Source of the DNA: Mytilus californianus | Taxonomy: Eukaryota | NCBI RefSeq assembly: GCF_021869535.1 | Contig: NW_026262581.1 | Coordinates: forward strand, 79,422,001 to 79,486,000 | Reading direction: 5' to 3' | Length of the DNA: 64,000 bases | Part shown: positions 57,371 through 64,000 of the stretch, one piece after another | How positions within the stretch are numbered: position 1 is the stretch's first letter | Layout of the letters: every line of letters starts with the position of its first letter | Program-made: the position numbers and the translations under genes | Notes under the pieces: generated by a model | What the model was told of the DNA's origin: nothing | Seen by the model: only the letters and a program-made list of their open reading frames with translations | The model's database searches: none

Positions 57371-58284
57371 AATTGTTATTGTGTCCTTCAGAAGATTCGT
57401 AAATGATTTTTTTTCTATAGCAAGGCTCACCATTTTATAATACCGGAGACAGTCGGACTGACCATTCTGAATTATCAGTTTATCGTTTGATTATCTGTGT
57501 TTGGTTAACTAAAGTAGTCTTAAAATTTAATGTCCTTCTTTTTCGCATTTCAATGATTAGAGTAAAAAAAAGACATCAATGCTTGTCCGCAAACAGTACC
57601 ATCAAAGTGTCTGGAAAGCCTCTGTGTACTCTGATTGCATTCCAGTGCCGACTGTTTCGATCGATTGTTGCCAAAATCATTTACGTTGTAACCTGTTAAT
57701 ATTTCTCTGGGATATAAGTGCTTAATGGTAATTCCAGAGTTAGTTCGTCGCTTATGCTTTTAACCTTATATTCTGGAACTTTTCAAGCTACTCCTTGATA
57801 TCAAATACCACGGGAAACAAGGGTTTGGGTCTTGGATTCACTGCCAAGAAAATGGGTTAACTACAGCCGTTTGTAGATGACTTACTTCTTCTATTCTAGT
57901 GGTTCTTTCGCATGACCGTATAACTTTTACTAATTGTCTATTCTTAGAACAGACTGGAGTTCAGTACATGGCCTATATACATACACACCTCACGTGAGAA
58001 AAATACATTAATTCATAACTGATTTAGTAGAGATATTTCACATTTTTACATTAATAGTTTGTTTACGTATTTGATGCCGCACTGTTGTATGTTCGACATA
58101 CGTACGATCAAAGCAATTGGTATACGATTTATTGTATCAAAAATTAACTGCACTCATGTACCCATTCATGCCACTATATCATGTGTTCTGTAAGCCGACG
58201 AGGAAAGGCATTACCCGAATAACGATGGATCATGTACTGTGCTTCAACCTTAGATTAAGCCAAAATTTTCTATATTTTTATATA

Positions 58285-58418
58285 GCCTTGTAGATCGAAA
58301 GTATGGTCTAAGGCGTTGGACCCAGTGCAATTGTCGTTGGTGTCTCAATAGCTTAAATCCGAATCCCACCGAGGGAAGAGTATAGATTTGCAAATGTACT
58401 ACATTGTTAGGCTATAAG
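58285..58418 (+). mobile_element. Degenerate tRNA-derived SINE head
   Basis: A-box-like TGGTCTAAGG (58304-58313) and B-box-like TCCGAATCCC (58358-58367); no intact cloverleaf. Confidence 0.5.
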
Positions 58419-59798
58419 TAAATATAAAATCATAATCAAACTTTACGCCCACGTTCATTTCTCTTATATAAAGTGACCTTACAATCTTATAACTAGGTGT
58501 ATTGATACATTAAGTAGGAGAGTGGTACAGCTTCCGCACCAGTAACCGTCAGTAAATGCCTTTGTGAATATATGCAACGTCCCACCGTGTCTGTAGTATG
58601 TATATACTTTTTTTATCTAGATTTGAGTCCATTGCATCTGTTAGTATAAATTCATCGGAAGTAATGTCATGATGATGGCTAGTGCGTTTTTTTTTATGTT
58701 TATTATATTTTATTTACATGTGTTTTCCAACTCTGCAAAATCACATCTGGTAAAGTTAGAAGATTTCACGCCATTTGTACGTACATGTTTGCAATGTTTA
58801 ATTTAACCTTGAATACGAAAAAAAATGCTTCTCAAGGGGTCTTATATCAATTTTGATTAAGGGAAAAGCTAGGACATATTTATTAATATGAGAAAACATG
58901 TAATAATCAAAATATACCGCGAACTAGTGCAACAACTCAATCATTGGAATGCGGATCTGTCAAATTCATATAAAAGTTCAGTTTACCTGCATGCAGTTTG
59001 ATTTTGGGTCCAAATTCAGTTCTTTAATTAATACTAAATCTCATGTTAGCAATATACATGTATATGATATATAGAGCACATTGATGCTTTCTGTTGAAAT
59101 TGATCGAACAACATTCAAATATTTCTTTCTTTGGTAGTAATCCAAATTGAACTATATTGCAGCGGATGCATTCTTTCTGTGATAATCATTTTCAATATGT
59201 CCCCTTTCGTGGTAAATAAGAGGCAACTGAACAGTAGTTTACTGGTGTTCAAATCGCATAAATCCATTTTGAAAATACAAATCAAGGTAAAAAAATAAAA
59301 ACTGAGGAAATCGCTTGAAATCCAAAAGGAGCAAGACCGGTGCGTCTCCTGGTCATTTGGTTATATATTGATTTTGAGGTCGGATGTTGCACACTTCAAA
59401 ACGATGATAACTAGTGATCACTAGTAAATTGAAATATGAGCTGTTTGATATTAGTGAAGACGTTTCAAACGTTTTTAACGATGGCTTTAAATTTATATTG
59501 ATTTTTTGTTGTTGTTGTTTTTGTTAATGCAAGGATGGGTGGGTGGGTGGGGTTAGAATAGTTTTATCTGGTTCTAAAGAAATATAATTGCAACATCGGT
59601 GTTGCTTAAGTAAGTGACTGGATAACACAAAATATCCTGTAACAACAAGTTATGTCCTTTATCTTATCCACTGCAACACAGATTATGTATCTGCATATTG
59701 TATAAATCTTATACGGTTTTATAAAAGTTAGTTTATAATTAGATACTTGTCACATAATCTTTGTACCTTTGAATATTCATAGCACGTTCACCACAAAG

Positions 59799-59891
59799 TA
59801 TATAAAGGCTCAGGAGAGTTGTAGTCAACATTTTATTACGAATAAACTGTAATCGACATCAACTTTTTGCACAGGAACACTTTAACATAAG
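59799..59891 (+). promoter_or_regulatory. Candidate SELENOP TATA box and non-coding first exon
   Basis: TATATAAA at 59799-59806, Inr-like TAGT about 25 nt downstream, and a strong donor AAG|GTAAGA at 59892. The coding exon begins with an acceptor (62370) only 10 nt before the ATG, so an upstream exon is required. Confidence 0.55.
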
Positions 59892-61837
59892 GTAAGAATG
59901 TTAGTTTTCAATCCATGTAGCATTTAGCTTTCTCGGGGCGTGATAAAATACATCCGAACATCATATAAAGTCTTAAAATCTGATTTCAGATGAATCGTAT
60001 ATAAATATTTCTTCAAATTCTACAAGTGTAAATAATTTAAAACACACGACCACTCAAATAAGGCAATTTCAGAAAGCTTCTTGTGTCATGAAAGTATACT
60101 TACTATTAGGCTCTTCGTTCGAGCAGAATTATTATGGTGTCAGATAGCTCGTCCAATTGCCCTTTCACACTTAGTAAGATAAGTCAATTTCGACTTTTAC
60201 TGATGTTTATGAAATATGAACAATGTAAGGATTGATGGAATAGCGCTCCTTTCCATTTGATTGTTGCCTGACTTGTCGTTTTGGGTATTTTCAGTGCTTG
60301 CCTTTCCTATCAGAAGTGTCTTGACGGAATCTATTGAACCAATGATTCTTCATGGTTATGCTGTAGTCATCTCTTCGGAAATCAAATGGCTTTTTTTTTT
60401 GGTTTGCAATTAGGGAAAATCGTCGTAGACGACCACGATAAAGCAACACGATGAGTGTACTAGTGGAGAAGGGTCTGTCTGGCCCCGTTTTTTTGTGGGG
60501 TTACCTTTAATTTTCGGTATAGCATTTTTCTTTTTTTTTGTGGCCATGGTGTTGTTTGCACTTCTTAGGTTTATAATTTTGATTTCCCTTTGTATCTATC
60601 TTCCTCTCTATTTAGGTATAAATTTACTGTTAATTACTCGTATATAAAATTTTCTTAGCCAGCTATAATTAAGTATTTCGAACAAACATGGACTATATGG
60701 TAGTAACTTGGATTGATTTTAAAAGAAAAAAATACTTGGAAACTTTTACTAAATTATGAATACACAGCCCTTATAAAACGTCGAGTTCTTACATAAACAA
60801 CACACGAGTTTACAATATTTCACAAACCAGGCATGTTGTCAAGATGAGCGAAACATTAACAATTTAGTTAAGCACCTTATAAGTTTTATATCACAAATCC
60901 TATTGTACTTCCTTATTATCTAAATCAAGGACAGGTGTAAAAGAGACGTTGAACTTGTTTTGCACATATTTATCAGCTGGAGTTTACACTATATAGATAA
61001 CAAGATAAACAATAAAAAGATGAATAATTTATGTGATTTTTAGAATATTGCACAACAATTAAATAACATCATTTAATTTGGACGAAAAGGAGTGCTTACA
61101 TCGTTTTCGAGCTAATTTACGAAGACGTCAATTTAAGAGCCACCAAAAATGATTATGTATTGTCATTAAAAAATAATGCTGCTTGATTTTCGGTTATTTA
61201 TCAAGGAGTCCGTATCACGTGGCTGTTACATGTATAACTAATTGCGTTTATATATTTCAATTTTTTAGTTTGTGGAATATTCTCAAACTGTTTATATTTA
61301 TATAATGTCCTACAATAACGATTTTTCGACATGGTTTTTATCTTCGATTTAAGATCGGTATTGAAATAACTTTTTCAATTATCAAAATCTTAAGAATGAT
61401 TTTCAAGTGATATGCTTTCGGCTTACATGCTTTCCATTTCTGGGCTCTCTATTTAACCAAGTGTTTAAACTAAGTTCTATTGTGGCGGCCATCTTTGATT
61501 TCAGATCGAAATCGAATTATAATTTCTATGAAGGATCTGAATATCACAGTTCAACGTTTTCTCGTAGATGTTCACAAACGTTTACAATGGATGGAACTGC
61601 ATGACATTAACCGCTATCATAACACTAAGTGACATGTTAGCTAAAACGATGATGCGTATGTTTATCTGTCGAAAGTCTACACAGAGGTATAAATGTTTTG
61701 ATTGTAACCATTACACAATACTTTATTTATTTTTTTTATTTTGAAGAAGGTTACACAGTTAGTTACATAATCTAACTTCTATGAGTCTCAGTCATAGAAA
61801 AGCATTATCTAAACACAAAATTGGTCAACGAATTGCT

Positions 61838-62177
61838 TAAATAAACTCATCATAAATACCAGGATTGAACTTTTGTATTTGCGCCAGACGCGCGTTTCGT
61901 CTACAAAAGACTCATCAGTGACGCTCGAATAAAGATAAAGTTAAAAAGACGAAATAAAGTACGAAGTTGAAGAGCATTGAGGACCAAAATTTCCTAAAGG
62001 TTTTGCCAAATACAGCTAAGGTAATCTATTCCTGAGGTAGAAAAGCCTTAGTTTTTAAAAAATGTAAAGTTTTGTAAACAGTTAATTTATAATTATGACC
62101 ATATCAATGATAATTCATGTCAAACAGAAGTGCTGACTACTGGGCTGGTGATACCATCGGGGATTAAAAACTCAACC
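61838..62177 (-). mobile_element. Retrozyme-like / Penelope-associated non-autonomous repeat monomer carrying the hammerhead
   Basis: About 340-bp non-coding segment containing the ribozyme. It resembles the abundant mussel hammerhead repeat as recalled, not searched. Boundaries are approximate. Confidence 0.6.
61881..61924 (-). ncRNA. Minimal type I hammerhead ribozyme
   Basis: The minus strand reads GCGUCA-CUGAUGA-GUC(uuuugua)GAC-GAAA-CGCGC-GUC-UGGCGC. Stem I is GCGUCA:UGGCGC, stem II is GUC:GAC, both core boxes are intact, stem III is the palindrome ACGCGCGU, and the cleavage triplet is GUC (61889-61887). Confidence 0.88.
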
Positions 62178-62380
62178 AAATTTACTGTAAAATATATAGA
62201 CATTGTTGCAATGCTTACCTCTCCAAATTAATAATTACTTTTATTATGTTACCCATTATGTTTTGTTACAAAATTCCATTTTGTAATGTTTTTGTTGTAA
62301 AACAAACAAAAAAATCTTTCAGTAAGCTTAATCACAGATAAATTTAGTCAACTCCATTCTTTTCTTTCAGAAGAGAAATT

Positions 62381-62574
62381 ATGCAGAGCCCCGGTGTCTT
62401 AACCGGGTTGCTCGCTGCTGCTTTACTAGTCAGCGTGTCTGGAAGGTTCTGTCAGTACCCACCAACCTGGCGAACCACCAGTGAAGATCAGCCAATGTTG
62501 AACACGCGTGGCAAAGTAACAGTAGTGGCACTACTGTTGGCTACATGACCCATGTGTCAGCATCAAGCGGCAGG
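62381..62574 (+). CDS. SELENOP: Selenoprotein P, first coding exon; signal peptide plus in-frame UGA (Sec56) at 62546-62548
   Basis: MQSPGVLTGLLAAALLVSVSGRFCQYPPTW...QPMLNTRGKVTVVALLLAT-U-PMCQHQAA matches the SELENOP pattern CxxPPxW...GxVTVVALLxAS-U-xxC. Acceptor tttctttcag and donor GTATGT. Confidence 0.93.
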
Positions 62575-62839
62575 GTATGTGTTATCATTTATTAGATATA
62601 TATTGAATGTTGTTACATGTAAATCATTTCAGTCTATTAATTCATAAATAATAGAAATTAAAAGTTTGTGTATTTACATTTTTGTTTAATTTTGTCAAAT
62701 ATTCGCGAGGGAGATGAATAGTGACACACGTTTGAGATGTAGGTTATGGGGGTAAACAAGTGGGATTACGGGATATAGGGGGTACAAATAGGTGGTATCA
62801 GGAAAAAAGTGGGAAATGGGAACAAAGGCAAAAAAATAA

Positions 62840-63154
62840 ACTGTTGACTTCATACAAAATATCATTGATCTATCACAAGTAGATCCTATCAAACTATTTT
62901 GAGCAGAAAACTTAACTTTGAAAATTGCGGATTAATTCAAAGTCACTGGACCATGTCCTAGGGGACAGAGCCTCAAAATAGTCGTCAAACTGATATGTAC
63001 TGATAGTAATGCAGCTTTATATTAAATATCACAAGTAGTTCCTATCAAACTAACTTAAGCAGAAAACTTAACTATTGTTGACGCCGTCGCCGTCGCCGGA
63101 AAAGCAATCCTTATGTCTCGCTTTCCGCGACTTTCGTCGCAGGCGAGACAAAAA
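62840..63154 (-). mobile_element. HINE-like fragment in SELENOP intron 2
   Basis: Head tgtctcgc...gcgacttt cgtcgc aggcgagacaaaaa with GCC/GTC microsatellite; one duplicated internal unit. Confidence 0.65.
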
Positions 63155-63261
63155 CGGGATTTGGGAAATTAGCACCTCGTGTCACCCCCCCCCCCCCCCT
63201 AATTTCATTCGCCTTTATTCATTAAGAATATTTCAAATAAATATATGTTTGTACAATGTAG

Positions 63262-63459
63262 GCTGGAGACTATTCGTCAAGAATACATCGCCCAGGGCCG
63301 TACAGAAATCAGTTTTATGATTATCAATTCCAAAGAAGTCCCTGAACAAATTGGACAACTTTCCAGCAGAACTAACTTTCCTGTGTACCAAGATACAAAC
63401 GCTACAAACATATGGAACAAACTAAATGGCGGGAAAGATGACGTATTGATATATGATAG
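63262..63459 (+). CDS. SELENOP: Selenoprotein P coding exon 2
   Basis: (G)LETIRQEYIAQGRTEISFMIINSK...FPVYQDTNATNIWNKLNGGKDDVLIYD(R) contains the SELENOP motifs PVYQ and WxxLxGxKDDxLIYDR. Phase 2/2. Confidence 0.95.
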
Positions 63460-63911: not shown

Positions 63912-64000
63912 ATGCGGCAAATTAGTTTACTTTATACCGTTTCCATCAAGCTTGTTGCGTTACCATCTTACTGATTGGGCGATCCGTACTGCATACGATA
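63912..64000 (+). CDS. SELENOP: Selenoprotein P coding exon 3 (truncated by window end)
   Basis: (R)CGKLVYFIPFPSSLLRYHLTDWAIRTAYD matches RCGRLVYHLxxPxSxL...AIxxAY. Acceptor tttgttcacag. Confidence 0.93.

Follow-up and report, generated by a model that had tools for sequence, protein, structure and literature searches.

What brought a self-cleaving RNA motif into the first intron of SELENOP, and does its presence there matter to the gene? The question is raised by a stretch of 64,000 nt from Mytilus californianus (NCBI RefSeq assembly GCF_021869535.1, contig NW_026262581.1, positions 79,422,001 to 79,486,000 of the forward strand; this whole stretch is called the window here), in which an initial annotation, made from the letters, had noticed a hammerhead ribozyme within a short repeat. 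To answer it we considered the gene around the repeat, the ribozyme, the family to which the repeat belongs, the way in which members of that family are inserted, and the RNA found at the locus.

The part of SELENOP that surrounds the repeat is as follows.

59818 to 59891, plus strand: probable SELENOP exon 1 (5' UTR), its 5' limit approximate, from stranded sense reads, contig letters and depth arithmetic
59892 to 62370, plus strand: SELENOP intron 1, in which 1,946 nt separate the donor from the repeat and 192 nt the repeat from the acceptor
62371 to 62575, plus strand: SELENOP exon 2, from RNA contigs covering 62369-62575 and a SelP_N match

The exons were matched to Pfam one by one, and SelP_N (PF04592) was found on the plus strand at 62381-62545 (E 9e-8), 63263-63457 (E 2e-9) and 63913-63999 (E 3e-3). 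A pyrimidine tract and a CAG acceptor precede exon 2, whose first base is 62371; the exon has its ATG at 62381 and carries an in-frame TGA (selenocysteine) at 62546-62548 that is followed by P-M-C, which gives the UxxC motif. Two RNA contigs over this exon carry 74 and 20 extra letters upstream. The depths in the 59801-60000 bin, 1.77 and 0.69, equal contig depth multiplied by the share of the bin that these letters would fill (4.78 x 74/200 and 6.87 x 20/200), and the extra letters are therefore placed in that bin, where stranded raw reads of sense polarity were found as well. Exon 1 is flanked by a TATA-like box at 59799-59807 and by a donor, AG/GTAAGA, after 59891, and this donor together with the acceptor at 62371 delimits intron 1. 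RNA contigs and stranded reads thus place the repeat where the initial annotation had put it, antisense within SELENOP intron 1. Its claim that the SELENOP pre-mRNA itself is not cut also holds, since the sense transcript bears only the complement of the ribozyme. The same complement presents three sense-orientation AATAAA hexamers in intron 1, at 61840, 61928 and 61953, and the RNA reads do not suggest premature 3' ends near any of them.

Other repeats were seen close to these exons. Two of them, at 59201-59400 and 58201-58400, are close neighbours of the SELENOP promoter region on its upstream side and reach a contig depth of ~1,200-2,100 compared with ~40 in their flanks, with a few RNA reads of sense polarity. 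A very abundant repeat occupies 62800-63200 in SELENOP intron 2, where summed contig depth is ~3x10^5 against ~20-50 in single-copy flanks; it contains an internal 47-nt direct repeat, 156 nt apart (62871-62917 and 63027-63073), and has an RNA strand bias of ~40 compared with 1.3, which corresponds to minus-strand RNA. At 63186-63200 of the same intron a run of ~14 C stands beside a GC-rich stretch, which is unusual in a window of 32% GC.

The catalytic motif is defined by two features on the strand opposite to the gene.

61881 to 61924, minus strand: type I hammerhead ribozyme motif (positions 255-298 of the repeat unit described below), from Rfam RF00163 and direct reading
61886 to 61887, minus strand: predicted self-cleavage site GUC/U, after C 61887, positions counted on the sequence; the same site is marked in the published Mytilus clone Mg353

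The conserved elements CUGAUGA, GAAA and GUC follow each other in the correct order on the minus strand (61918-61887), both when read directly and when aligned to the model consensus, so that all catalytic nucleotides are present as the initial annotation had stated. Its stem lengths are also borne out. Helix I (GCGUCA/UGGCGC) has 6 bp including one G-U and is open-ended, which is the type I topology, helix II (GUC(U)/(A)GAC) has 3-4 bp, and helix III lies in the palindrome ACGCGCGU, whose final three letters are the GUC triplet. In a monomer this helix III amounts to 2 bp and a GCGC loop. The covariance-model alignment gives the same arrangement, with 6 bp in helix I, 3 bp and a 7-nt loop in helix II, and helix III within the palindrome. 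Counting places the C of GUC at 61887, and a cut between 61887 and 61886 on the minus strand had been predicted before.

Statistical recognition of the motif is less straightforward. In a search of the surrounding 4 kb with Hammerhead_1 (RF00163) the full model (1-45) matched 61924-61881 on the minus strand with 34.0 bits (E 7e-6). This was the sole hammerhead match in these 4 kb, in line with the earlier claim of a single ribozyme. The score equals the curated gathering score of 34 and the match was unlisted in the gathering-threshold scan of the whole window, where no family reached its threshold; by score alone the motif is therefore borderline. Minimum-free-energy folding of the 50-nt motif kept helix I, chose another fold for the rest without the three-way junction and was no better than shuffles; absence of the junction is expected and uninformative, because helix III has only 2 bp in the monomer. 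Folding of the whole 341-nt repeat likewise gave no junction and was no better than that of shuffled sequence. A search of the genome with the 32-nt ribozyme core returned 1,536 exact copies (770 forward and 766 reverse) and none for the reversed control pattern. Together with the E value, this count rules out a chance motif, and the motif is identical to a hammerhead which cleaves in experiment.

That hammerhead is the one of Mg353, a genomic clone from M. galloprovincialis which, according to Cervera & de la Peña (2020, PMC7229834), self-cleaves co-transcriptionally at ~0.1 per min with a single ribozyme. The identity of the two motifs predicts self-cleavage of the window copy. It also bears on an expectation of the initial annotation, efficient cleavage as dimers, which does not stand in that form, as the published single-ribozyme construct shows that a dimer is not required. 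The label given to the motif, a palindromic minimal hammerhead of the Penelope or retrozyme type, survives by half. Its retrozyme part is supported by the published family, and its "minimal" Penelope variant is replaced by the published class, in which (PMC7229834) the mussel hammerhead is a type I retrozyme motif lacking most loop-loop contacts.

The repeat that carries the ribozyme was delimited by a search of the mussel's own genome.

61838 to 62178, minus strand: 5'-truncated Mytilus hammerhead retrozyme copy that covers positions 1-341 of the 365-nt unit, from the own-genome search with mapped boundaries
61838 to 61848, minus strand: family-typical 3' terminus (...GAGTTTATTTA), ~49 nt past the cut and a putative start of reverse transcription, shared by 62 of 68 insertion ends

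The search with 61700-62300 gave 3,230 first-look candidates, and the 82 that were scored had 88-95% identity, all over the same 341 nt. These matches span positions 123-463 of the query as it runs from 62300 to 61700, i.e. 62178-61838 of the window, which agrees to within 1 nt with the 61838-62177 proposed earlier. The initial annotation had made its reading dependent on related copies elsewhere, and the exact cores and first-look candidates supply them. Copies are dispersed over many chromosomes and have unrelated flanks. Between head-to-tail neighbours the same conserved stretch of 24 nt invariably occurs, and from this constant spacer it follows that the full unit is 365 nt long. The window copy is without these 24 nt at its 5' side and so amounts to 0.93 unit. 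Tandem arrays, for which the initial annotation had advised a search, exist elsewhere in the genome, where insertions span 1.1 to 3.7 units and keep their junctions conserved, in contrast to the SELENOP locus, where only the 0.93 unit is present. The earlier reading as a single monomer can accordingly be made more precise, as one insertion of just under one unit.

A majority-rule unit was built from 11 full genomic units and serves as a coordinate ruler only. Compared with it the window copy is 96.5% identical, and none of its 12 substitutions falls inside the ribozyme. This intactness should not be taken as evidence of selection, because 14 changes in 341 nt correspond to an expectation of ~1.8 within the 44-nt motif. 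The copy has a GC content of 34% and its longest open frame is 42 codons; no ORF of at least 80 aa was found between 56712 and 63075. A tRNA-like part, as in the head of a SINE, was looked for in the copy and not found, and a tRNA-like SINE was rejected on this ground. A metazoan non-LTR retrozyme is described in PMC7229834 as an element of ~170-400 nt and low GC with one type I hammerhead and without LTR, primer-binding site or polypurine tract. The noncoding 365-nt unit, its GC, its one hammerhead and its lack of a tRNA-like part match that description.

The resemblance extends to a particular family. PMC7229834 reports ~5,000 type I hammerheads in M. galloprovincialis, in repeats of 350-390 bp, a range that includes our unit, and prints the sequence of Mg353 in its Supplementary Table 2. 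Mg353 was compared with the window copy by reading and by primer patterns only. Read in this way the two share an identical ribozyme and marked cut site, and the 24-nt inter-unit segment occurs in Mg353 too; they are also alike in low GC, in being noncoding and in belonging to families of thousands of copies. Published primers match the window copy at the expected places (109R with 0 mismatches, 110D and 110R with 1 each), where none would be expected by chance. Primer 109D, which lies just 3' of the ribozyme, differs by reading at 5 of its 26 positions, and the window copy therefore belongs to another subfamily. The differences from the published system include the host, here M. californianus, this subfamily, and the state of the copy, which is an orphan piece of 0.93 unit and not part of a tandem array. 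By ribozyme, 24-nt segment and primer matches, what had been called a retrozyme-like repeat is, at the level of sequence, a member of the published Mytilus retrozyme family, and the family, its cleavage and its circles were already known. The copy at SELENOP is one of thousands, real but ordinary.

Retrozymes are not the only elements with such ribozymes. In 2014 Cervera and de la Peña reportedly described Penelope-like elements whose pseudo-LTRs carry type I hammerheads.

The 341-nt stretch might then derive from the terminal repeat of a Penelope-like element that was itself autonomous. In elements of this kind the type I hammerhead is found close to the 3' end, and their insertions are 5'-truncated partial tandems (Craig et al. 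2021, PMC8557442), and GIY-YIG endonuclease domains are frequent in the M. californianus genome (1,480 first-look candidates in a genome search, with open frames up to 911 aa). The likeness includes the short palindromic helix III and insertion without clear target duplications. It ends at the unit, which has 365 nt rather than 3-4 kb and neither a reverse transcriptase nor a GIY-YIG ORF, closes on itself head to tail with no coding part, and matches the noncoding clone Mg353. The lack of longer open frames, in the copy and in the interval around it, points in the same direction, and we regard a Penelope fragment as very improbable. The relation of the Mytilus retrozyme to Penelope-like elements is at most that of a parasite to its putative enzyme supplier. 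Satellite 2 of newts and salamanders and the axolotl retrozymes (330-350 nt) are a second point of comparison. They are alike in having tandem noncoding units of similar size whose type I hammerhead forms only a very short helix III, and unlike in sequence, which is unrelated. Efficient cleavage of the axolotl motifs needs a dimer, as opposed to the mussel construct with one ribozyme, whose rate is that given above.

To examine how copies of the retrozyme arrive in the genome, we mapped 68 insertions on the 365-nt unit, 28 from the best genome matches and 40 on contig 1. The latter were selected by exact ribozyme core alone and are in this respect an unbiased sample. Their two ends behave differently. 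The 3' ends fall at unit positions 336-347, i.e. in the terminal letters given above for the window copy, in 62 of the 68 insertions and are ragged but fixed, and the 5' ends are spread over the unit. Insertions in the unbiased sample (n=40) have a median length of 0.52 unit; 29 are shorter than 0.9 unit and 8 exceed 1.05 units. The window copy is typical of the family. Insertions of several units, up to the 3.7 already mentioned, run across intact cut sites.

The sequence immediately beyond the fixed end is informative about the template. Position 341 is reached by 40 insertions; 24 of these carry one or more extra bases that match the adjoining segment of the unit (expected 16%, p 3e-10), and 20 carry two or more (expected 5%, p 2e-15). 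Such continuation exceeds chance, so the template RNA extended beyond the end of the insertion, and copying therefore started at an internal site, which is neither the 3' end of the RNA nor the ribozyme cut. When 69 insertions were compared with shuffled flank pairs, target-site duplications gave no signal (mean 4.25, control 4.14), and because no duplication is detectable there is no positive mark of an integration enzyme.

Spread by satellite dynamics, through unequal exchange or segmental duplication and with the hammerhead as a passenger that involves no RNA intermediate, would agree with this lack of target-site duplications and with the existence of head-to-tail arrays. It would account poorly for the dispersal of copies among unrelated flanks, for the majority of copies of less than one unit, which are not a product of array dynamics, and for the combination of one ragged but fixed end with a variable opposite end, a polarity that marks reverse transcription begun at a fixed point. 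We therefore give an origin as satellite DNA very little credence.

The pattern of insertion fits target-primed reverse transcription with a fixed internal start on circular or multimeric RNA and with frequent early termination. A further step would be to take these scars as direct genomic evidence that priming occurs ~49 nt 3' of the cut on a circle or an uncleaved multimer, that it usually aborts in the first turn, and that most hammerheads of the family are for this reason orphan sub-monomers, a reading to which we give about an even chance. Primed copying of circles has been proposed for retrozymes in PMC7229834, which describes the Mytilus elements as dimers to large multimers, in contrast to the M. 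californianus genome, where a copy with the ribozyme usually falls short of one unit. The fixed start site and the majority of sub-monomers are not reported in that paper as far as we could consult it, and are mildly new material. That Penelope-like elements mobilise retrozymes is a published view that has the standing of a hypothesis.

One further regularity was observed at the 5' ends. Where an insertion exceeds one or two units by a little, this end often lies inside the ribozyme, at unit positions 267-291 (loci L003, L007, L008, L011, L013, L016, L021, L024, L029 and L031), and in four independent loci it is at position 284. Stalling of reverse transcriptase in the folded motif may be the cause. 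Run-off at a self-cleaved 5' end was rejected as an explanation, as these ends lie upstream of the cut at 292/293 and the cluster is weak in the unbiased sample.

From all these results we consider the window stretch to be, very probably, a dead-on-arrival insertion of the noncoding, non-autonomous Mytilus hammerhead retrozyme with its unit of 365 nt. In the sister species M. galloprovincialis, according to PMC7229834, head-to-tail source arrays are transcribed, the hammerheads cut the RNA into monomers and an RtcB-type tRNA ligase closes these into circles, which are abundant in gonad and mantle. Judging from the insertion scars, a reverse transcriptase acting in trans would then begin cDNA synthesis at a single internal position, ~49 nt 3' of the cut, on an RNA running past this site, which would be a circle or a multimer. 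The enzyme is probably that of a Penelope-like element, and the frequent GIY-YIG domains of the genome point to a possible source of it. The length copied would vary widely, with about a quarter of a unit at one extreme and over three units at the other. In the case described here synthesis would have ended 24 nt before a full turn was complete, and the product would have landed on the opposite strand in SELENOP intron 1. An antisense transcript through the copy would be cut at most once, between 61887 and 61886, and because it has a single ribozyme the copy can yield neither a unit-length RNA nor a circle.

RNA reads were used to see what is expressed at the copy. In the stranded run the SELENOP exons appear in one orientation only, and strand can thus be read from this run. 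Over the copy both polarities are represented, with 143 reads against 91 in the half that holds the ribozyme and 60 against 53 in the other half; these are counts at the level of the family, and short reads of this kind cannot show circles. The 365-nt retrozyme family is transcribed in M. californianus. As for the copy itself, 1,509 of 1,615 reads over it fit only in part, and their loose ends agree on the sequence of another subfamily, so these reads derive from elsewhere in the genome. Most of the tabulated read joints belong to other copies and come from a run that is probably DNA. In the one stranded RNA run there were no reads of either polarity at 60001-61800 of intron 1 and no antisense-polarity reads at 62201-62400, and therefore no read-through antisense RNA was seen. 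The RNA reads also did not pile up with their ends at the cut site 61887/61886, and neither cleavage ends nor circle junctions appeared there.

These observations bear on whether the host has taken over the ribozyme, for example to process a natural antisense transcript of SELENOP or to regulate the gene in some other way. Such a role might be suspected from an intact motif, free of the 12 substitutions and close to the acceptor of exon 2, the exon that carries the ATG. An unchanged motif is unremarkable given the ~1.8 changes expected there, the stranded run shows no read-through antisense RNA at 60001-61800 or 62201-62400, and the copy resembles thousands of other insertions. Takeover by the host is in our judgement highly unlikely, and the retrozyme insertion shows no sign of a role at SELENOP.

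The significance of this locus is accordingly small, as the ribozyme is opposite to the SELENOP strand, makes no circle alone and lies where no transcript through the copy was seen. The pattern of the family, with its fixed 3' start, continuing template, sub-monomer products and lack of target duplication, is a modest clue to the mobilisation of retrozymes, a process that is experimentally unsettled. For the annotation of mussel genomes it means that intact hammerheads, which number in the thousands, are to be read as the debris of a retroelement and not as regulators of particular genes.
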